Positions 417 through 41,849 of a stretch of 64,000 nt of DNA are shown piece by piece; the first letter of the stretch is position 1; every line of letters begins with the position of its first letter. The notes beneath the pieces were generated by a model. That model saw only the letters and a list, made by a program, of their open reading frames with translations. It ran no database searches and was not told the DNA's origin. This DNA comes from Zygnema circumcarinatum SAG 698-1b. Taxonomy: Eukaryota > Plantae > Zygnematophyceae. Position numbers and translations under genes: made by a program. The DNA lies in assembly GCA_037447605.1 (NCBI GenBank), contig CM074804.1:4441909-4505908 (forward strand). The letters are read 5' to 3'.

Positions 417-1564
417 GGCTGTCTGTTGGGTTTGGGGATTGTAAAGTAGTGAGGAACCATGTATGGTGTATGTATGTATGCTATGTATTTAAGGTGAATG
501 TGCAGAATATATTTTCAAAGAGGGGATAGGCAGCCTTTTGGCAGGGGATGCTTGGAAAGTGGAGTAGGGAAGATTTTAGGATTCGCTCACACCTCTTGCA
601 TTTGCATGTGGTAAATAATATTTGCGGCCACTTTTCACGTATGAAGTTCAGCTAGCAATCGCAGACTCCTCTTGTAAACTGGCGGATTTGCATGTGTTTC
701 CTTTCAGAGTCGAGTGGTTTATGCTGATTCACAAAAGGTTCGCTGGTAACCTGTACCTAGTCAAGCTATTAATGACACCAGGGCAGTAATCGGCAAATGA
801 TTGTACTCGCAGATAGTGCAATAATATTTACATATACAACACTGATATTGCTGACATGCTGAAATAGTAACGTCAATGTAAATTATTGTCGTAAAACCCA
901 CAATGCCACTGCGAAATTTCGAGTCGCACAAGCTGGCGTAAGCCCGTGCCGTACAGCCCTCAGCGCGTGCGCAGGCCACGGATCGGAGCGGCCTTCAACG
1001 CGCCGTGACAGGCCGTCACGCATTCACATGTCCAGATTCCGACGACTGCTAGAACTGTTTACTGCGTCTCCATGCGCAATCGCCAGAACTGCGCGCACAG
1101 AACTTGTCGTTCCGCGCGACGGCGCATGGAACGCGGCGCGCTGCATGGCCCGGCGCGACCCGCCGCGAGCGAGCGCAGAGAGAGAAAAGGAGAGAGCGGG
1201 AGAGGGCGCATGCGCTCGCGCGGGGAGCTGCCACGTCGCGGGCGAGCGCAGGGGTGCACGACATCCGGCCGATATAGCGCGGGCGGCGGGGGCCGTTAGA
1301 GCGTCGGAAGGGACGCCCGAGGTGCGTGCTGCTGTTGCTACGTGGCGTAGGCAGCAGGACGTCAGCCATGGCTGGCTGAGTGGGGTAGCAGTAGCAGGAG
1401 GTAGCGCAGAATTCCCTCCCTCCCTCCCTTCCTGCCTCCCCCGCCATCGCCTTCTCCAGCAGGAGGCAGCAGGTGGTACTTGTCGTGTGCATATGCTGTC
1501 TCGAGTCCTTATTGCGCGCGTAGGTCAGTTTCGGGTTCCGTAGAGCAGCGCAGAGCAGGGCAGC

Positions 1565-4500
1565 ATGGAGAGGGCGAGCGATCTCAATGGCGTGCTGACC
1601 ATGGACCTGCGGTGGCTGGCGTGCGTGAAGAGCCGCGTGTACATGATCCCGTCCTCGAGCGAGCGCGCAGACCGCGAGAGCTACCAGCCCGTGCTCGACC
1701 TCATCGGGGACTCCAGCGTCGTGCTCATCGGGGAGGGGTAGGGTTCAGGGCCGGTGGGAGGGGCTGGATTTAAGGAAATTTGGGAAGGGGGGAATCGTAA
1801 AGAGGTTAAGGGGAAGGGTGGAGGGAGACGATAGGGATCAAGAAAAAAGACGGGGCAGAGAGGAAGGGACAAGGCTTCAGGGAAAGAAATAGGGGATGGG
1901 TCTCAGGGGAAACGAGGGGGGCGGGGGTCGCGGGGGACAGAAGTGTCAGTGGAAGAGGGGATTTTCGAAGGTAGAATTTCCGAGAGGGGAAGAGGGGAAG
2001 AGGGGAGGCGGTAGGAGGGAGGGAGGGAGAGAGGGCCTGGTTGGAAGGAAGGAGTGTGGGGGGAGGTAGAGAGGTGGAAGGAGAGTGGAAGGTCGGAGAC
2101 TGGGAGAAGATGGTTTGAGGGATGGGGTTGGAACTGAGAAATTAGGGCTTTATTGTTTTTAGGGTTATTAGGGGATGTGGGAGGGGCTGACGGGAGGAGG
2201 GGAGGATGAGAAAGAGAGAAACAGAGAGGGAAGGCAGGTGCTGTGTAAGGGGCCAGGGGCGGAGGAGATGAAGGGACAGGGTGGGGAGGAAAGGGGGAGG
2301 GAGAGGAGAGAGAAAAGAAAGAGAGGGGGAGAGAGAGCGGAGGGGATGTGAGGAGGGCTTTTAGATAGCCACCGTGAGCGGGCTCTACTTCGTTTTTTCT
2401 CTGATGGGATATTTGGTTATTTTTTTCCCTCAGAACACACGGAACAGCAGACTTTTTCCAAGAGAGGCAGAAGATCACCAAGTGGCTCATTGAGGAAAAG
2501 GTAAAGCTTCTGTAACGTTTCAATTATTGGATGGTGAATGATAAATTTTACGAACCTCTGATCCTATTTGGATATTTCTTTCCTTTATGTTCTCAAACAT
2601 TTCAATTGTGGACGAACTCAGGATGGAAAAGAAAATGTTTTTCCATTCTTTCTTCTTTTTCTGTGCGTGATTTTTTGTTTTTTTCAGAATTTCACCATGC
2701 TTTGCGTGGAAGCTGATTGGCTGGACGCCCAGAAATGTCACTGCTATGTTCAAAACTTGGAGCACGTCGCCTCTGCAGAAGAGGCGCTCTCCGGATTTCA
2801 GCGGTTTCCTTCGTGGATGTGGCGAAATAAAGTGCGTTTTTTCAATTCTTTTTGAAAATGAGATATAGTCAATCTACGGCACATCTGTATGGGGATTTCA
2901 TATTTCTGAAATTTCAGGAGGGGCCAGAGTTCAGGGAGGGTGTGGTTTGTTGTAAAGGCGAGAGAAGAAAGAGGGGAGAAAGTCGGGAAGGGAGGAGGGG
3001 TACTGAAGTACAGCCAAACAGATTTGACTTCCGTCTTGTGAATGTTGGCTGTATTCACCTGATCTTCTTTCATGGAGGATATGACCCTCTCTTACTTTTA
3101 GAGCAGTGGAGACCTCCTGAAGCTAAGAGACAGTTGCTTTCAAACTTCTAGCGGAAGCAGGTCAAGGCCTATATAATTCGTTAAGGAAAAAGCTGTTGCG
3201 TGTAGAGTCTTTCCGTACTGCTAACCAGCTAACCAACCACATGCATGCCAGTAATGAAGGTGCAATGATGATGATAAGAATGACGACGTTGTTCGAGCTA
3301 ATGTTGAAGCTAAAAAAAAAAAGGCGTTTTCATGTGTTTTGCCGTCAAGCAACAGTGTGTTTCAGTATTTTGGAAGCTTGTAAATTGCATGTCACTGCAG
3401 GTCATGAGGTCTTCTTTTTTGTGTTTTCTCAAGATTTCTAACCATTTTTTAGTTGTTCTCCATCATTGTGCACGTGTGGATAGATTCATGCAGCGGTACT
3501 GAACTCATCACTGTGTATGTGGGGCAACGGAAGAGAGTGAGGAGTAAGAGTGAGAAGGTACAGATATAGCGGAGGGTAGAGATTTACTGGAAAGGGGCTG
3601 AAGGCTGGGGAGAAGAGAAGCATACAAGAAGATAGGAGGTGGAAGGGAGATAGTGGAAAGGGGAGGGGAAGAGAAGAGAGTGCGAAGGAGGGAACGGGAG
3701 AGAGAAATTGCAAAGAGACATACGGAAAGAAAAATAACATACAGAGAGCGAGTAGAGAGAAGGATAGAAGAGAGATAGAGAGAGAGATAGAGGGAGCGGG
3801 AGGGAGAGAGGTGGGGTTGAAATCTGACTTACCTTTGCAGGGGACATTCCAAACGTCGCTTCACTTTTTTCACCTCGTACCCACTTTGTCGTTCAAAAAC
3901 AACATGAAAATAAAATCTTCAACCCTCTCTCCCCTCACTCCCTCCCTCCCCGTCCTCCCTCCTTTCCTCCCTTCCCCTCCGTTCCTTCCTGTTTTTTTCC
4001 TCCCTGTCCCCCCCTCCGCTCTCTCTCCATCTCTCCCCCCCCTCCCCACACACAGGAAGTGAAGCAGTTCTTGGAGTGGCTCCGAGATCGCAACAGCAAA
4101 ATTCTCCGTCAGGCGGAGGAGGGAGGCGACAAGAGAGAGCAAATGGAGAAGCTGGTGGGGTTCTATGGACTGGACATTTACAGCATGCAGGCGTCTCTCT
4201 TGGCTCTCAAAAGTTACTTGGAGGAGAAATATCCGGAAATTGCGAAGAAGGTTTTGGAGCATTACGATGACCTCTCTGTGCGGGGAGTACCGGCCCTTAG
4301 AGAGGACAGTCCGGACTTGCGGGACTTAGCCAACAGTCCGGTCGTGGAGCAGCTGCTGAGCATGTTGGAGCAGGTGAGCTGTCGAAGTTACCATAAGAGA
4401 TGTAGGGATTGATTGACTATGGTTAATAAGGTATTGCTCGTTAAATCGCTAGCTCCCTAAGCGGGATTAAAGCTGCATTTTTTGCTAAACGAGAAGGATT

Positions 4501-6831
4501 ATTTCTGAACAAGCGGCATCTGAAAGTATGCTATCGTTAGAGAGACTGTTGTTCCATGTCGAGATACAGTGCTGTTTTGAGGTGTGTCTGCAATCCGGAA
4601 GTTTTTTGTGTCTTTTTGAAGGAGTTGGACCTTCGGGGGTTTCGCGGTTTCTAATGTTTTGGTTACGCTTTGGGTTTTAGGACTTTGACGATTAGTTGAT
4701 TCCTCTCTTGGTTTTGTTTCCCTGACTGTAGGCAGGAAAAAAGCTTTTAGAGGAACCATGCAGCGAAGATGCTCGCGTTGCCTCCGACTTGTACTTCTAC
4801 GCTCAGCAGGTGAGATCTCTCTCTCTTTCTCACTCTTTCTCGCTCGTTCTCACTCTCTCTCTCCCTCTCTCCCTCTCCATATTTCTCTCTCCTCTCCGCC
4901 TCCACCTGAACGCGCATCCGACGGCAGCGCGTGATGGTCGGAATGGAGGCGCCTCCAGTTCCAAGCAGCCGCTTACTTAGCCGCTATTGTTAAGCCGCCA
5001 ATTTGTTAGTCAATTTAGTCACACTTTTTTAACCGCGGGAAAAAAAATAGTCATGGGCATAAGATCCATTTTCTAATTTCTTCATTCGTGCGTTTTCGTC
5101 GCATTGTGCTTCTGTACTACAATTCATACACCCCCTCCACCCCTCGCCTATTCACTCGTCCCTCCTCGCCCTATCTCCTCTGTTCCCTTTCCCACCCCCC
5201 TCTCGCCATCTTCTCTACTCTTCCTCCACTCTTACTCGCACTCTCCGCCTATCCCTTTCTCCCCTTTTTCCCTCTTCTCTTGACCTCCCAATTTCCCCTG
5301 TTTTATCCTTCCCCGCCCTTCCCTTCCTTTCTCCCTGCTCTCTCCCCTCTCCACCCCTTTCCCTCATCCCTGTCTCTCCCTTTTCCTCCCTCGCTCTTCC
5401 CCTTTTTCTCTCTCTCCCCTCTTCCCTCACCTCCCCCTCCTCTCCCTCCCCTTCTTCCGTCCCTCCGCCCTCCTCCACCCTCTCCGCCGGTCCCCATCCA
5501 CAACCCCCTCCAATCTCCCCTTCTCCCTTCATATTTCTCCGTTTCCCTCCCTCCCTCTCGCGCTCCTCTCTCAACCCATCCCCCCCTCTCTCCCACCCCC
5601 CTCTCCCCCCCCATCAGAACGCCCGCATCATGGCGAACGCCCGGTCGTACTACCGCGCCCTCCTTCAGGGCGGGCAGGCTGCATGGAACGTGCGCGAGCA
5701 GCACATGTTCCAAACCTTCATGGCGCTGCTTTCGCACGTGCGCTCACCCCCCGGCGGGCGCAAGGCCCCCGCGAAGGCGGTGGTGTGGGCGCACAACGTT
5801 CACGTTGGGGACGCACGGGGGATGGAGATGGGCTGGAAGGGTGCGCTTAGCCTCGGCCAGATGGTGCGGGAACGTTCCGGACTCGCCTCCGTCAGCGTCG
5901 GATTCAGCACCTACGAGGTGGGGGAGGGGGGGGGGGGAGAGGGGGAACTTGAGGGAAGAGGGAAAGGGCTTTAAACAAATCCTTCATTCGTAAAGTTAGT
6001 TCATCGTGTTTCTGTAAGTTGAAGGGTGGAGTTTTGGCTTGACTAGCCCGTGTTTGTTTACTTCGTCCTTCCTTTGGTATTTTTAGTTCTTGTATTGATA
6101 ACCTTTCATTTGAAGGAGTGTTTTGGGAGGGGGGTCCAACGGCAGGGCACTCTCACAACGGCGGACGAGTGGGGTGGAGAGCCGAAGACGTATACGCTGA
6201 AGCCCGCGAAGCTGGGCAGCTATGAAGAGATTTTTCATAGTCTTGAGCTTCCAAGGTTCGTGCTGCATCTCGGTTCGGTTCCTTTCAAGGACCCCACCTT
6301 GCTTCAGGTACTTTCCTTTTTCCGAATAACCTTATGTACTCTCTCTCTCTCTCCCCCCCCCCTCTCTCTCTCTCACTCTCTCTCTCTCTGTCTTTCTTTC
6401 CCCCCACTCTCCCTACCTCCCTTCCACTCTTCTTCTCTCTCTCCCTTTCGCCCTCTTATCTCCCTCTCACCCACTCTCAAATACTAACTTTTTGCATGTG
6501 AGCATGTCACCTTTTACTGCAAGTTTAATCCATTTCTCCGTCATGGAGTACGGGAAAGGAGGCGGCTACATGCCTAAATTGCTTTATCAAGCGTATAGAT
6601 TGCGATGGTTATCTTCAGAAGGTTATTTTTTTTGTGTTGAATGAACTTGAACCATTAACTCGGCTTACTCGCAATCACGTGGAAACGGATTTTTGCGGTT
6701 TCCAGCGTGAAATAGGCGTGCTCTATAAGCCCGATAAGGAAGACATGTGCCACTACTTCCATGCGAAGCTCTCCGACCAGTTCGACGTCATCATCCATAT
6801 CGACAAGTCGCATGCCGTGGAACCGTTGTGA
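1565..6831 (+). CDS. Erythromycin esterase family (EreA/EreB-like) protein, 8 exons: 1565-1737, 2434-2500, 2688-2831, 4056-4373, 4732-4809, 5618-5917, 6146-6307, 6706-6831
   Basis: The spliced protein carries the family motifs in order: VVLIGEG|THGTADFFQERQKITKWLIEEK, VEADWLDA, FQRFPSWMWRN, VGFYGLDIYSM, WNVREQHM, AVVWAHNVHVGDAR, LSLGQMVRE, ADEWG, REIGVLYKP, HYFHAKLSDQFDVIIHID. All junctions are GT-AG and in frame. Confidence 0.9.
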
Positions 6832-12737: not shown

Positions 12738-12754
12738 AGAGAGANNNNNNNNNN

Positions 12755-34278: not shown

Positions 34279-35302
34279 GAGAAAAATGAGAATGTGTTTT
34301 AGACGGGGAGAAAGCTCCACTTCACGTGTACGTGAAGTCTTCCGTTGAGATAAGAGGTAGTGGAGGCGAGTAGAGGTTCAGAGGGGTATAAAAGCGATAA
34401 GTAATGCATTTGTTGGAGTCGCCATATTGAGCTGTATTCTGCGTCAGAGTGAGCTGCAGAGGAGACCTTTTCTCCTATCATAGCTGCATCCCCTATTTTT
34501 TTTGGTCTCTTACGTGTTCTTTTGAGGTGTGGTTCTTTCAAAAGGTTTGTATTTGATTTTTCTTTCAGCCCTATGGTTTGCACGTTAGTAATGTAGTCCC
34601 TCGCAGACGGTTTCTGCTCCATTTTTCAGTGCAAGTTGCATAGCGTCAATTTAGACAAATGTACAAAAGATTGGGTACTTGCGCCGTTCTTTCCTTCTTA
34701 TTACGGCTGCCCAAGCGAGGATGAACTTTTCTACGAATGGGCTCCTTTTGGGCCTGTGCAAGTTTTAGTTCTGAGTCTGTATTGAAAAAGAATTTAGGTG
34801 ACTTAGAAAATTTTCAACCATCTACATGTAACCTGCTTACGATTGAAACCGGCTGCGGGTGTGCCAAGTCAATTCTAGAAGTTGCTTTTCTGCTTTAACA
34901 TGTGTTCCTAAAGAAATAGAAATGCTAGGAATGGGTGGGTTCTTTGCGCTGAAGTTTGGATTGTTAGTTTCAGTTTCAGTTTCTGTTTAGTGTTTCATTT
35001 CACAAGCTGGTCATATTCTGGGCTTTTACTGAGGGGATTGGAAGCTGAGTGTCGACCATAAACCCCCTAAAATCCCTTAAGACCTGGAAATCTCCAACAT
35101 TTGAAATCTGTTATTCGCGACAAAAAAAACCTGAACTCGAAGTCAATACCCTGGAATACTTAAAAATCATACAAGCTGTAAAAACTCTGAAAACAGAAGA
35201 TGGAAGTGGCATTGATCTCACGATGGCGAGGCCATCAAATGTACATGGACAAAATCAGCATGGGGAACAACGAGGAACTGGGAGCAAAGGACAAAAGAAA
35301 AA

Positions 35303-36288
35303 GGAGAACTATATACCGGCCCCTTTTTTGGTTATCCCGCCATTGTTTTTTTGAAATCCGACCCTCCCATTTCGGCTATTCTGCCCCCTGTTTTGAAATA
35401 TCCCGCCCCCCCCCCATTTTGGATATTCCCCCCCGTTTTCTCCTTCTCACACATCAGCGCAACGTTCGAGAGAGAGAGCAAAGGAGAGAAATAGAGTGAG
35501 CAGAGGAGTGAGAACAAAGGAGAGAGAGACTAGAGTAGAGAGCACAGGAGAGAGCAAAGGGGAGAGAGAATGAGCAGAGGAGTGAGAGCAAAGGAGAGAG
35601 AGACTAGAGTAGAGAGCACAAGAGAAAGCAAAGGAGAGAGAGTAGAGGAGAGAAAGACTAGAGGAGAGAGAGCAGAGGAGAGAGAGAGAGAGAGAAAGAG
35701 AGAAAGAGAGAAAGAGAGAGAGAGAGAGAGCAGAGTGAGAGCAGAGGAGAGAGACTACAGGAGAGAGCAAAGGAGAGAGAAGAGAGAGAGAGAGCAAAGG
35801 AGCGAGAGCCGAGGAGAGAGAGTATAGAGGAGAGAGAAAGAGCAGAGGAGTGAGAGTAAAGGAGAGAGAGACTAGAGGAGAGAGCACAGGAGAGAGAGAG
35901 AATGAGCAGAGGAGAGAGAGAGAGAAAGAGAGAGAGAGAGAAGAGAGAGCAAGCAAGCAAGCCAACCATTACATCATGACAGAGCTTCACACCCACCAAA
36001 AGAAAAAGGATAAAAAGAGAATAAAAAGTTCCTAAATATAGAAAAACTCGCAAACCGAGAGGAAGAAGGGAAGGGAGGGGTGGGCAGGGGAGGGGAGGGG
36101 AGGGGTGGGCAGGGGAGGGGAGGGTAGAGGACGGGAGGGCCGGGTAAGAAATATTCAAAACAGGGGGGCGATCTCCTCCCGAAGTATCCAAAATGGGGGA
36201 GGGGGGCAGAATAGCCGAAATGGGAGGGTCGGATTTCAAAAAACCAGTGGCGGGATAACCAAAAAAGGGGGGCGGTATATAGTTCTCC
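35303..36288. mobile_element. Non-autonomous long-TIR DNA transposon (MULE-like MITE), copy 1
   Basis: Imperfect TIRs of about 120 bp (GGAGAACTATATACCG...CGGTATATAGTTCTCC), an 8-bp target-site duplication AAGAAAAA on both sides, a GA-rich tandem interior and no transposase. Confidence 0.85.
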
Positions 36289-37220
36289 AAGAAAAAAGCT
36301 AGGAGCGAAAAGTTACGCCTATGCTCAACAACGCTTCAAGCCCTCCCTCAAGCAGCCGCGAAGGGCACATCGCGCGGAGGGAGGGAGGGAAGGAGGGAGC
36401 GGCGGAAGGCCACCGACNNNNNNNNNNTGGAGTCGCCATATTGAGCTGTATTCTGCGTCAGAGTGAGCTGCAGAGGAGACCTTTTCTCCTATCATAGCTG
36501 CATCCCCTATTTTTTTTGGTCTCTTACGTGTTCTTTTGAGGTGTGGTTCTTTCAAAAGGTTTGTATTTGATTTTTCTTTCAGCCCTATGGTTTGCACGTT
36601 AGTAATGTAGTCCCTCGCAGACGGTTTCTGCTCCATTTTTCAGTGCAAGTTGCATAGCGTCAATTTAGACAAATGTACAAAAGATTGGGTACTTGCGCCG
36701 TTCTTTCCTTCTTATTACGGCTGCCCAAGCGAGGATGAACTTTTCTACGAATGGGCTCCTTTTGGGCCTGTGCAAGTTTTAGTTCTGAGTCTGTATTGAA
36801 AAAGAATTTAGGTGACTTAGAAAATTTTCAACCATCTACATGTAACCTGCTTACGATTGAAACCGGCTGCGGGTGTGCCAAGTCAATTCTAGAAGTTGCT
36901 TTTCTGCTTTAACATGTGTTCCTAAAGAAATAGAAATGCTAGGAATGGGTGGGTTCTTTGCGCTGAAGTTTGGATTGTTAGTTTCAGTTTCAGTTTCTGT
37001 TTAGTGTTTCATTTCACAAGCTGGTCATATTCTGGGCTTTTACTGAGGGGATTGGAAGCTGAGTGTCGACCATAAACCCCCTAAAATCCCTTAAGACCTG
37101 GAAATCTCCAACATTTGAAATCTGTTATTCGCGACAAAAAAAACCTGAACTCGAAGTCAATACCCTGGAATACTTAAAAATCATACAAGCTGTAAAAACT
37201 CTGAAAACAGAAGATGGAAG

Positions 37221-37694
37221 TGGCATTGATCTCACGATGGCGAGGCCATCAAATGTACATGGACAAAATCAGCATGGGGAACAACGAGGAACTGGGAGCA
37301 AAGGACAAAAGAAAAAGGAGAACTATATACCGGCCCCTTTTTTGGTTATCCCGCCATTGTTTTTTTGAAATCCGACCCTCCCATTTCGGCTATTCTGCCC
37401 CCTGTTTTGAAATATCCCGCCCCCCCCCCATTTTGGATATTTCCCCCCCGTTTTCTCCTTCTCACACATCAGCGCAACGTTCGAGAGAGAGAGCAAAGGA
37501 GAGAAATAGAGTGAGCAGAGGAGTGAGAACAAAGGAGAGAGAGACTAGAGTAGAGAGCACAGGAGAGAGCAAAGGGGAGAGAGAATGAGCAGAGGAGTGA
37601 GAGCAAAGGAGAGAGAGACTAGAGTAGAGAGCACAAGAGAGAGCAAAGGAGAGAGAGTAGAGGAGAGAAAGACTAGAGGAGAGAGAGCAGAGGG

Positions 37695-37733
<39 letters not shown>

Positions 37734-38680
37734 CAGAGTGAGAGCAGAGGAGAGAGACTACAGGAGAGAGCAAAGGAGAGAGAGAAGAGAGAGAGAGCAA
37801 AGGAGCGAGAGCCGAGGAGAGAGAGTATAGAGGAGAGAGAAAGAGCAGAGGAGTGAGAGTAGAGGAGAGAGAGACTAGAGGAGAGAGCAAAGGAGAGAGA
37901 GAGAATGAGCAGAGGAGAGAGAGAGAGAAAGAGAGAGAGAGAGAAGAGAGAGCAAGCAAGCAAGCCAACCATTACATCATGACAGAGCTTCACACCCACC
38001 AAAAGAAAAAGGATAAAAAGAGAATAAAAAGTTCCTAAATATAGAAAAACTCGCAAACCGAGAGGAAGAAGGGAAGGGAGGGGTGGGCAGGGGAGGGGAG
38101 GGGAGGGGTGGGCAGGGGAGGGGAGGGTAGAGGACGGGAGGGCCGGGTAAGAAATATTCAAAACAGGGGGGCGATCTCCTCCCGAAGTATCCAAAATGGG
38201 GGAGGGGGGCAGAATAGCCGAAATGGGAGGGTCGGATTTCAAAAAACCAGTGGCGGGATAACCAAAAAAGGGGGGCGGTATATAGTTCTCCAAGAAAAAA
38301 GCTAGGAGCGAAAAGTTACGCCTATGCTCAACAACGCTTCAAGCCCTCCCTCAAGCAGCCGCGAAGGGCACATCGCGCGGAGGGAGGGAGGGAAGGAGGG
38401 AGCGGCGGAAGGCCACCGACACGGCCACCATCAACGGCGGCTTCACGCCGAAGGAGCGGAGAAGCGAGGCAACGCTGAAGGGCGATGAAAATGCGCTGTC
38501 GATAAAAAGTAGCGAGGATCGCCGGAGGAGGGGAGGAGGGCTTCCGGGGCCGTGTGCGCATCTGGGAGGACCGATGGGCGCACTGACGAAGGAAAGCACC
38601 CAAACGGGTGTCGAGGCAACCAAAAATATCAACAGCCATAGGAACAAACTCGTCGGCCGCGTCGCGGTGGGCATATGCGC
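37221..38680 (-). mobile_element. 5'-truncated non-LTR retrotransposon remnant (CRE-like, restriction-like endonuclease C-terminus), interrupted by the MITE; partial copy at 35207-36417
   Basis: The minus strand reads EFVPMAVDIFGCLDTRLGAFLRQCAHR..FYRQRIFIALQRCLA, like the FVPxAxxxFG..RQRxSxALQR end of REL-type LINE ORFs. A homologous uninterrupted copy lies at 50097-50400. Confidence 0.6.
37317..38291. mobile_element. Non-autonomous long-TIR DNA transposon (MULE-like MITE), copy 2 (within the duplicated block)
   Basis: Same TIRs and target-site duplication as 35303-36288. Confidence 0.85.
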
Positions 38681-38779: not shown

Positions 38780-41700
38780 ATGGCACCCCGAATGCGCTCT
38801 TCCTCCCCTCTCTTTCTCTCCCTCTTTCTCTCCCTCCTTTCCCTCTCCCGCCTCTCTCCGTTCCGCCTCTCACTCTCTCTCCTCTCGCTCTTCCTCCTCT
38901 CCTTCTCTTTTTCTGCAACAAGCACCTCTCTTGAGACCTTTGAGAGCTCCTCTGAAGCCATGGGCGCAATAGCTTTCGCCGTTGTAGGCCGAACTGAGTA
39001 TGCTTTTGACCTCTACTCTCTCCCTACTCCCCCTCTTGAAGCTTCACGACAGACTGAAGGGCGTCTTAAAGAGTGGATAGGAAAATCCTCCAAAGCGCAG
39101 TCCGAGCCATGGGCTGCACGTGGCAGAAAGCTGCTGAACGTAGGGGAGAGGGAGGAGGAGGGAGAAGAGGGGAGTGGGGTTAAGGAGGGAGTGGAGGGGA
39201 AGGGAGAGGAGTGGGAGCGGGAGCGAGAGCGGGAGCAGGAGGAGGGAAAGGAGGAGGAGAAGGTGTGTGTGGAGCAGGGGGAGGAGGGAGAGGAGGATGG
39301 GGGCGAGGAGGTGAAGAAGGGAGAGGAGCAGGTGGGGGAGGAGCGATACACTGCAGGCCCCTCTGTGAACTATCACGGTTACTCCATTCCGAGCAGCTCC
39401 AAACTTAGGGAGGTGCTTGAAGAGAGAAAGTTAAAAAGTGGGTCTAACGATGGAGTTGACATTTTGTTCATTTCTGAACGGAATGGAAATGTAGCGGAGG
39501 TTTTCTATGCGAACGGGAACCTTTCCGCTCCACCCTTGCAGCTGACACATGGACTGGCCCTCCATGACCGTCCCTGTGCTGTTCCGGGAACTGCGGAAAT
39601 GGTGTTGTCAGCAACGGAACGACCCTCAGGGACACCCCGGCAGGCTTGGACGGCTGTCTATAAGCATGATTTTAGGCTCAATACGACCAAGGTTAGTCTC
39701 CCCCCCCCCCCGGCCCCACCCCCGGTCCTTTTCTTTCTCTACCTTGCTTTTGTCCTTTTTTTCAGGTATGTGTGTTTGCCTGCTTCATTTGAAAGGTTAC
39801 ATTTGTATTGTCTGCATTTAAAGTACTCATTCGGGTAACTTGTTTATTTTTATTTTTGTGTTTTGCAATGCTGCAAATCTTCTTCCCTAGAGCCGCTCCC
39901 ACTTGCTTTCAAAATTAAAAGTTTCACTGCATGCTGTTCAGTGAGTAGAAGCCTACTTCGTAATAAAGGAACATTAGCAGTCTGGCTACCGAAGAAAGCG
40001 CTGAGACCAAAGGTAACAGGCAACCGATAGGAAGCGAAGTGATACAACCGAAACGAACAGCCTACGGCGTGACCGAAGACTTCTTGCTCACCTCTCCCTC
40101 TCCTCTCTTGGCTCTCTTCTCTCTACCTCCTCTCCCCTTCCTCACTCGCTCTCCCCTCCCTCCCTTTTTCCCCTCTCTCTCTCTCCACTCTCCCTCCTTG
40201 TTTCCCTCTCCTCCCTCTCTCCTTTTCAGCGCCTCTCACCGGAAGGCGTAACCGACTATAGCCCTTCCGTTTCCCCTTCAGGAGGATGGGTAGCTGTCGC
40301 ATCCCCCAAAAGCTCTCCCTTCTGGTCGACCCGCCAAGGTCCCCCTCTCGATATCTTCACCTTCCGCACATCGGACGGCTCAGATCGACTCAAAGTAGCC
40401 AGCAACGGTGGATGGCCCTCTTGGGGCCCTACCGACCGTACCCTCTATTTCCACAGCCCCGCCTCTGATGGATGGTACAGCCTTTATAAAGTAGAACTGC
40501 CAGAAGATATGAAGGCTGCAAGTTTCCCTCTTGAAGCTGTTCGTTTAAGTCCTCCTGGAGTGCATGTTCTCACTCCTTCTGCGGCTCCTTCTGGAAACTT
40601 CGTTGCGGTAGCAACAAGGCGACCTCCCTCCCCCTACAGGCATATTGAAGTTTGGGACTTAGAACGAAAGACGCTCCTTCCTCTCACAGCTACTGTACGC
40701 CCTGAGGCGCATCATTACAGTCCATTCGTTTTTGCAAATTCGAAGCAGATTGGTTATCATCGTTGTAGAGGGGTTTGCAAGCGAACAGCGTCGTGGGAGA
40801 TTGAAATGGAGGAGGAGAGAGCATCACATGGAGATAGAGCTTTGGTGGGAGAGAGCAACGTTCCAAATATTGAGTCTCTTCAATCGCCTATTCCCGGCTT
40901 GGCACTGCTGAGAACGAGTGGAGACTTTCCCGTGTTTTCTCCCAACGGTTCCATGGTGGCTATGATTCCGTCAGTCGGAGTGCGGGAGTCGGGAGTTGTA
41001 GTAATGAACGTGGACGGCTCGAATAAGCGCCAAGTATTCAGAGGCTCTGCATTTGGGTTGTCGTGGAATCCCGTTAAAGACGACACGGTGTATACCAGTT
41101 GTGGAATGATCTTCGCCAAGGAGCATTCTGAGGTTCACATTGTGGCGATATCTGGAGTGAAGGAGGGCGCTTTGGAAGAGGGAGAGCGCCCAGGGAGTGG
41201 CGCCTCTCTCTCCTCCCTGAAGTTGACTAAGGAAGGAACCGGAAACAATGCGTTCCCTGCAGTTTCCCCAGACGGGACAAAAATCGTTTTTCGTTCAGGT
41301 CGATCTGGGCACAAAAATCTGTATATAACGGATGCCGAGAAAGGGGAAGAGGGTTTTTTGAAAAGGCTTACAGAGGGGCCTTGGACGGATACTATGCCGA
41401 ACTGGTCACCTGATGGGAAATGGATCGCTTTCAGTTCAGATCGCGAGCAAGAGGGAACGTTTTCTATATACGTGGTGAATCCGGATGGCTCCGGGCTGCG
41501 GAAAGTTTTTGGAACTGGGGTTCAAGGAAGGGCAAACCATCCCTTTTTCAGCCCGGACTCGAAACAGATAGTGTTTACTTCTGACTATGCGGGGATTTCT
41601 GCAGAACCGGTCGCATTTCCGCACCAGTTTCAGCCGTATGGGGAAATTTTTGTCATGAATTTGGATGGGAGCGGGTTGGTGAGGCTCACGCACAATCAGG

Positions 41701-41849
41701 TGGAGGACGGGACTCCCTCTTGGGGACGGAAATTTGTCGGTTCGGAGGAGATCACTGGGGAGGGGGAAAAGCTGACTTGTGGATTTAGTGATGTTCGTTG
41801 GCTGGGTGCTCCTAACTCGGCGCAGGAGCAAGAAGTGCAGGTTCTATGA
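38780..41849 (+). CDS. TolB-like / DPP6 N-terminal-like (PD40 beta-propeller) protein, 2 exons (38780-~39691, 40230-41849), with a hydrophobic N-terminus
   Basis: GAIAFAVVGRTEYAFDLY, RLSPEGVTDYSPSVSPSG, NNAFPAVSPDGTKIVFRSGRSGHKNLYI, RLTEGPWTDTMPNWSPDGKWIAFSSDR, SAEPVAFPHQFQPYGEIF, RLTHNQVEDGTPSW. The start could alternatively be 38960. Confidence 0.9.

Follow-up and report, generated by a model that had tools for sequence, protein, structure and literature searches.

A divergent, intron-bearing member of the erythromycin esterase family in the nuclear genome of the streptophyte alga Zygnema circumcarinatum

Within the erythromycin esterase (Ere) family, macrolide activity has been shown for the EreA–EreD lineages only. 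The mechanism described for EreC relies on H50 as the general base, which is held by E47, on E78 and H289, which position the water, and on R261, which stabilises the oxyanion (PMC7979712). BcR135 and BcR136 from Bacillus cereus are esterases that act on small model substrates such as p-nitrophenyl butyrate (PMC7979712), and their structures (PDB 3B55, 2RAD and 2QGM) were deposited under the name 'succinoglycan biosynthesis protein'. A further type, fused to a phosphoribosyltransferase (PRTase) domain, includes Rv2030c of Mycobacterium tuberculosis, a member of the HspX operon (PMC4410610). Among eukaryotes the haptophyte Chrysochromulina tobin carries a nuclear Ere-family gene of presumed bacterial origin, Ctob_004084 (PMC4580454), and Ere-family candidates for horizontal gene transfer have been reported from the dinoflagellate Fugacium kawagutii (PMC11453091); both are precedents for expressed nuclear genes, but they belong to other eukaryotic supergroups and are compared here by description only. 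Our literature search found no paper on Ere-family members of the green lineage. Here we describe such a gene in a 64,000-nucleotide stretch of the genome of Zygnema circumcarinatum SAG 698-1b (assembly GCA_037447605.1, contig CM074804.1, positions 4,441,909 to 4,505,908 of the forward strand), which we refer to as the window and number from its first letter.

We consider it likely that the locus is a functional nuclear gene of this streptophyte alga, that its product of about 455 amino acids is a two-lobed and probably cytosolic hydrolase of the Ere (erythromycin esterase/BcR135–136) family, and that it is of old bacterial descent. As read from the sequence, the gene occupies positions 1565–6831 of the + strand, to which all features below belong, and is divided into eight exons by seven introns, each with GT..AG borders; the coding length of 1368 nt corresponds to 455 codons and a TGA stop. 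An in-frame TAG, read directly at 1541..1543, lies eight codons 5' of the ATG and bounds the open reading frame (ORF), so that exon 1 has no N-terminal extension. The exons were searched singly, and the closest natural homologue, P0356 (465 aa), served as the full-length stand-in for the protein; a second homologue, P0001, does not cover exons 1 to 4.

Exon 1 (1565..1737) opens with the ATG and ends in VVLIGE plus two bases of a Gly codon (59% identity to P0356 residues 35–75); the Glu codon of the GExxH motif, at 1733..1735, is the equivalent of EreC E47. Beyond intron 1 (1738..2433; 696 nt, phase 2), exon 2 (2434..2500; (G)THGTADFFQERQKITKWLIEEK; 73% identity to P0356 residues 77–98) carries the His codon of the same motif (2438..2440), equivalent to H50, the general base of EreC (PMC7979712). 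Intron 2 (2501..2687; 187 nt, phase 0), which has the same position as in the relative's gene, is followed by exon 3 (2688..2831; 62% identity to P0356), which reads ..VEADW..FQRFPSWMWRNK and holds the Glu codon equivalent to EreC E78 at 2709..2711. Intron 3 is the longest (2832..4055; 1224 nt) and precedes exon 4 (4056..4373), the helical minor-lobe region and the most diverged exon, with 48% identity to P0356. Intron 4 (4374..4731; 358 nt), the 26 codons of exon 5 (4732..4809) and intron 5 (4810..5617; 808 nt, 34% of it CT-type tracts) lead to exon 6 (5618..5917; WNVRE ... WAHNVHVGDARGMEMGW), in which the Arg codon of WNxR (5693..5695) and the His codon of WAHN (5792..5794) correspond to EreC R261 and H289; this exon is 60% identical to P0356 and 67–68% to P0001 (67% exon by exon). 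Exon 7 (6146..6307; 76% identity to P0356, 74% to P0001) lies between introns 6 (5918..6145; 228 nt) and 7 (6308..6705; 398 nt), and exon 8 (6706..6831; 71% and 66%, respectively) ends in EPL and the TGA stop, without the ETYPxG tail of the bacterial consensus.

Scanned separately, five of the eight exons pass the gathering threshold of the Pfam profile PF05139 (Erythro_esteras; 26.4 bits) on their own: exon 3 (43.1 bits, 5.9e-11), exon 4 (49.9 bits, 5e-13), exon 6 (92.9 bits, 4.3e-26), exon 7 (29.4 bits, 8.7e-07) and exon 8 (35.6 bits, 1.1e-08). Their matches are collinear and adjoin one another, covering profile positions 6–51, 52–150, 174–266, 267–309 and 324–357, and because they stand in profile order chance ORFs are implausible. 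The exons tile P0356 at residues 35–75, the split codon 76, 77–98, 99–146, 147–242, 243–268, 269–369, 370–423 and 424–464, with neither gap nor overlap at any of the seven junctions; since P0356 is intron-free, all seven junctions match a mature mRNA. Base composition follows the same division, with a GC content of 57.5% in exons (74% at third codon positions) versus 48.7% in introns, and with purine-only or pyrimidine-only runs of at least 15 nt making up 16.5% of intron bases, none of the exon bases and 3.9% of the remaining window (locally up to 10.7%). The seven GT..AG introns, their host-like tracts and the eukaryotic neighbours described below document the integration of this bacterial-type gene into the host genome, and we regard it as confirmed that the gene is real, intact, intron-bearing and nuclear. 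The initial annotation, made from the letters alone, had proposed an intact eight-exon gene with host-style GA/CT-rich introns, flanked by plant-type genes and retaining the Ere active-site residues, and had suggested a check against the Erythro_esteras profile; that check, run exon by exon, bears it out, as do the frame, the splice borders, the tiling on P0356, the tract statistics, the alignments and the flanking genes.

The closest relatives are few. When exon 6 was run with HMMER against 1.84 billion representative proteins, 1576 matches came back, and a single one of these, P0001 (240 aa, from contig L001; 68% identity), falls below 1e-30, all others being at most 55% identical. Runs SRR8128902 and SRR8128905-7 are the source of P0001 and P0271/P0356, and P0356 is encoded without interruption on contigs of 2.0–2.3 kb from three sequencing runs (L084–L086), which, to judge from their UTR-like flanks (resembling untranslated regions), look like mature mRNAs. 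Because P0001 and P0356 occur together in one run at 61–66% identity to each other, the relative has two paralogues. A further contig, L003, differs from L085 solely by an insert of 37 nt with CAG at its end (L003:714-750 versus L085:707|708), and this insert sits exactly between codons 98 and 99 of P0356, after ...EEK/QEK, which is the position and phase of intron 2 in the window gene. The most plausible reading is that an intron lies at this site in the relative too and that an acceptor further upstream was used, which would yield an ORF-truncating isoform. With its position shared, at least intron 2 thus predates the split of the two organisms, and as the relative that shares it has two paralogues, the gene and its acquisition are old. 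The mRNA-like contig of P0001 (L001:1-130, from SRR8128906) shows a separate peculiarity: about 65 codons of the exon-4 equivalent are gone and the frame changes there, which could reflect exon skipping or assembly collapse. No further clade member appeared among 5.8 billion protein clusters in a word- and length-limited search with P0001 and P0271, and a scan of 241 million metagenome records with a clade-specific peptide pattern gave no full-length match above 44%; clusters and metagenome records together thus hold only two sources of the clade, annotated plant proteomes not having been queried by taxon.

Alignments to the homologues, EreC and the BcR proteins show that the window gene keeps all five catalytic positions (Glu, His, Glu, Arg, His), the EreC set falling on GE(1733-1735)..H(2438-2440), VE(2709-2711)ADW, WNVR(5693-5695)E and WAH(5792-5794)N. 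Around this centre much has changed. Across 75 mostly bacterial sequences, 120 columns reach a conservation of at least 90%; of these, the window gene retains 95, including the equivalents of E75, H78, E106, R294 and H328, and departs from 24. Most of these changes are common to P0356 and P0001, among them (in P0356 numbering) P110L, E277R/K, D295E, S330V, A337G, T338M and E345A, and further N347S, V372L, A374T, A425E and S438C/Y. Both near-invariant cysteines (C210 and C228, P0356 numbering) are lost, the residues beside the catalytic His differ from the bacterial consensus and the C-terminal ETYPxG tail is absent. Shared, fixed changes that flank an intact catalytic centre are consistent with a functional shift under continued selection and not with decay.

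The fold can be judged from the orthologue P0356, whose AlphaFold2 (AF2) model (pLDDT 89.3, pTM 0.91) predicts two lobes, a major one built on a beta-sheet and a helical minor one. The model superimposes on 2qgm, 3b55 and 2rad with template-modelling (TM) scores of 0.76–0.80, on EreC with 0.67–0.68, and ChaN follows next. A profile built from P0271 and bacterial relatives gave the same order, matching 2QGM (1.8e-34) and 2RAD/3B55 (4.3e-30) over nearly their full length and EreC (6XCQ) weakly, at 5.7e-09 and in a partial alignment; a phmmer search of the PDB with exon 6 alone found no match. No transit peptide is apparent in the sequence of exon 1, a judgement made with no predictor run: the start precedes that of the bacterial proteins by only about 12 residues, and acidic residues (E2, D6 and D14) occur in the segment. 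As this N-terminus does not resemble a transit peptide, the protein is probably cytosolic.

BcR135 and BcR136 are thus the best matches in the PDB, by profile and by structure of the orthologue model, and they share with the window gene the two-lobe fold and the GExxHG, ExDW and WxHNxH motifs, but they are bacterial, intronless and only 18–20% identical. EreC (6XCQ/6XCS), which stands here for EreA–EreD, belongs to the same Pfam family, has the same fold and matches at the catalytic Glu-His, Glu, Arg and His, yet it is far more distant by profile, TM score and identity (15%), and it reads AHNNN where the window protein has AHNVH. Nearest outside the clade is the core group of bacterial proteins annotated as 'erythromycin esterase family protein' (about 448 aa, including the PRTase fusions of the Rv2030c type), at 38–46% identity; compared with it, the two near-invariant cysteines and the ETYPxG tail are missing from the algal clade, 24 of the 120 positions are changed and no PRTase lies nearby. 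The family at large, which the initial annotation called mainly bacterial, is overwhelmingly so, with at least 8000 candidates and named matches from many phyla. When a protein atlas was searched with P0356, the matched PF05139 clusters were all bacterial. The best bacterial matches lie at a flat 38–46% identity, along almost the whole protein, in Acidobacteriota, Chloroflexota/Thermomicrobiota, Actinomycetota, Cyanobacteriota, Pseudomonadota, Verrucomicrobiota, Gemmatimonadota and Myxococcota.

Three trees were computed: a FastTree phylogeny of 195 rows, with exon 6 as the row of the window and matches shorter than 380 aa left out; an IQ-TREE phylogeny of 66 rows (LG+C20 PMSF, 'quick'), with one row each for exons 4, 6 and 7; and a tree of 38 rows under LG+F+G4. 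Exons 1, 2, 3, 5 and 8 are too short and appear in none of them. All three recover a clade of the window gene, P0001 and P0356 with support of 99–100 on a stem of 0.7–1.1 (about 1) substitutions per site. The midpoint root falls on this stem, and the clade is only loosely attached to the rest of the tree. Approximately unbiased (AU) tests, based on fast LG+F+G4 searches of the 38 rows with no mixture model and hence weaker than a mixture-model test, rejected none of three alternative placements, among them one that unites the clade with the green-lineage homologues P0056, P0007 and P0078 and with P0142 (delta lnL, the difference in log-likelihood, 51.9; p-AU 0.11). None of the three trees nests the clade inside a bacterial donor group and no donor can be named. 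The notion of a horizontally acquired gene, put forward in the initial annotation, therefore holds in part: the gene is a real nuclear gene and bacterial ancestry is the most economical reading, while the trees neither show nor contradict the nesting within bacteria that the annotation had named as support.

A bacterial gene would, on this account, have entered the algal lineage long ago, after which introns were presumably gained, the gene was duplicated in at least one relative and about one-fifth of the near-invariant residues changed; with that many changed, the substrate is probably not the one on which the bacterial core group acts. In the predicted reaction the His, held by the Glu, would activate a water molecule, a second Glu and a second His would help to position it, and the Arg would stabilise the oxyanion during cleavage of an ester or lactone bond, without need of a metal. 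The product is accordingly best read, from sequence, as a putative metal-independent cytosolic ester or lactone hydrolase. Several points weigh against this account. The clade is known from two sources only; the bacterial origin is argued from the distribution of the family and not from nesting, the position in the trees being loose; relaxed constraint could explain part of the long stem; the mRNA that appears to support the gene model is that of another organism's homologue; and the predicted fold is that of the orthologue P0356, the window protein having been scored exon by exon.

The alternative that survives best concerns the route by which the gene arrived. Other members of the family in the green lineage are of the bacterial-consensus type, namely P0056 (ME000268S04601 of Mesotaenium endlicherianum), P0007, which is encoded on a GC-rich, chlorophyte-like genomic contig (L002), and P0078. 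They share the family and, broadly, the host lineage with the window gene, which could tentatively be seen as an old, fast-evolving duplicate of theirs, the whole going back to one ancient acquisition in Viridiplantae. A single clade with P0056 and P0007/P0078 costs 17.9 log-likelihood units and is not rejected (p-AU 0.42), and neofunctionalised duplicates typically sit on long stems. Against such a duplication, the free trees never join the two sets and place these proteins elsewhere, the chlorophyte-like gene is interrupted by introns at sites other than those in the window gene, and the other green-lineage members still carry the residues and the tail of the bacterial consensus, with 108–109 of the 120 consensus columns retained in Mesotaenium P0056 and in P0142 versus 95 in the window gene.

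Some features of these other green-lineage genes deserve mention in their own right. The chlorophyte-like gene (L002:6950-9425, a contig of run SRR8931238 with 61% GC) contains long low-complexity inserts and adjoins a CAF1C-type WD40 gene; shared synteny with the window was considered and discarded, the WD40 gene of the window lying about 37 kb from the Ere gene. The gene model of P0056 (633 aa) also includes long low-complexity stretches, one of them immediately ahead of the QNARV motif, close to where intron 5 lies in the window gene, and they resemble introns that the model has mistaken for coding sequence.

A different substrate class is suggested by the bacterial cousins of the nearest group, which are paired with or fused to PRTases. 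Across 80 bacterial loci (L004–L083), nothing in the gene context of this group points to antibiotics or resistance. A same-strand PF00156 neighbour is present at at least 22 of the 80, in eight phyla (for example L006:438-1169, L007:455-1222 and L014:437-1183), and the pair of PRTase and Ere-like gene is a conserved bacterial module. Fusions of 669 aa with a PRTase are common, fusions with PCMT exist, and DUF5335 and dienelactone hydrolase neighbours recur (as at L006:2575-2964 and L010:2572-3354, respectively). Together with the place of Rv2030c in the HspX operon (PMC4410610), this could hint at a role in a stress or dormancy pathway, with a nucleotide- or protein-linked ester and not a xenobiotic as substrate. 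We consider that role rather unlikely for the algal gene: the 64-kb window holds no PRTase-like sequence, the algal clade has diverged strongly from the PRTase-linked bacterial group, and a bacterial operon context does not carry over to a eukaryote.

Descent from the cyanobacterial ancestor of the plastid, that is, endosymbiotic gene transfer in place of a later bacterial donor, appears improbable. Nostoc, Anabaena and Coleofasciculus do have close members of the family, about 40% identical, and a grouping of the clade with cyanobacteria survives the AU test (p-AU 0.23), but the constrained tree costs 34.8 log-likelihood units and the identity to cyanobacteria does not exceed that to Acidobacteriota, Actinomycetota or Pseudomonadota. 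Both the lack of a transit peptide and the very sparse distribution of the clade speak against a plastid heritage.

Antibiotic defence fares worse. The initial annotation had suggested that the enzyme could protect the macrolide-sensitive 70S ribosome of the plastid, and one may picture it shielding organellar 70S ribosomes by hydrolysis of 14-membered macrolides or of similar lactones made by microbes. The residues on which Ere catalysis relies are indeed all in place, soil and freshwater algae meet macrolide producers, and the haptophyte homologue has been discussed in the same terms (PMC4580454). Yet in sequence and fold the protein stands closer to BcR135 and BcR136, for which esterase activity on small model substrates is all that is known, than to EreC, to which its identity is about 15%; it carries no organellar targeting signal; the residues beside its catalytic His differ even from the bacterial consensus; and the context of its bacterial cousins is one of PRTases, not of resistance. 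BcR136, for its part, reportedly cannot inactivate macrolides. Macrolide hydrolysis is thus unlikely and the protection of organellar ribosomes very doubtful indeed, and the suggestion of the annotation is not upheld. There is, in our estimate, equally little chance that a branch of the family specific to streptophyte algae has been retooled, through loss of the cysteine pair and the tail and rebuilding of the loop beside the catalytic His, into a cytosolic enzyme that cleaves a microbial macrolide or other lactone; if this were true, it would be a eukaryotic, chromosomally inherited antibiotic-detoxifying enzyme that protects organellar translation.

The surroundings of the gene are eukaryotic. 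The same contig carries genes for eEF1A, RPS4e, snurportin and WD40 proteins within the window, that for eEF1A being split by introns on the minus strand at 57.7–59.4 kb; its N-terminus we take to be plant-like. The window contains no second Ere-like segment. Contamination by bacteria, a chimeric assembly or a pseudogene in decay, which the mostly bacterial make-up of the family and two 10-N gaps elsewhere in the window might bring to mind, has a negligible chance of being the explanation and is ruled out by the seven spliceosomal-type introns with host-like tracts, the eukaryotic genes on the same contig, the intact 455-codon frame with its conserved catalytic and clade-specific residues and the close homologues that a relative expresses.

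Elsewhere in the window, a direct duplicate of 1.83 kb (34587-36417 and 36601-38420; 99.0% identity) is packed with CT-rich low-complexity ORFs; its copies are parted by one of the 10-N gaps (36418-36427), and either a genuine tandem repeat or an artefact of assembly could lie behind it. The other gap lies at 12745-12754. At 40509-41849 (+) an uninterrupted ORF of 446 aa encodes three PD40/TolB-type beta-propeller repeats (Pfam 1.2e-29); bacterial-looking and possibly intronless, it is another candidate for transfer within a eukaryotic contig.

With the Ere gene of Zygnema, a known enzyme family gains a new, divergent member and a streptophyte alga one further old gene of bacterial type; the case is well documented and adds to the enzyme genes of this type that the algal relatives of land plants have retained. 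The label 'erythromycin esterase' in such genomes should not be taken as a sign of antibiotic resistance. Clade-specific changes around an intact catalytic centre make the gene a clean subject for the study of what Ere enzymes do outside EreA–EreD, and the same functional question applies to the widespread PRTase-linked bacterial group, including Rv2030c of the M. tuberculosis dormancy operon.

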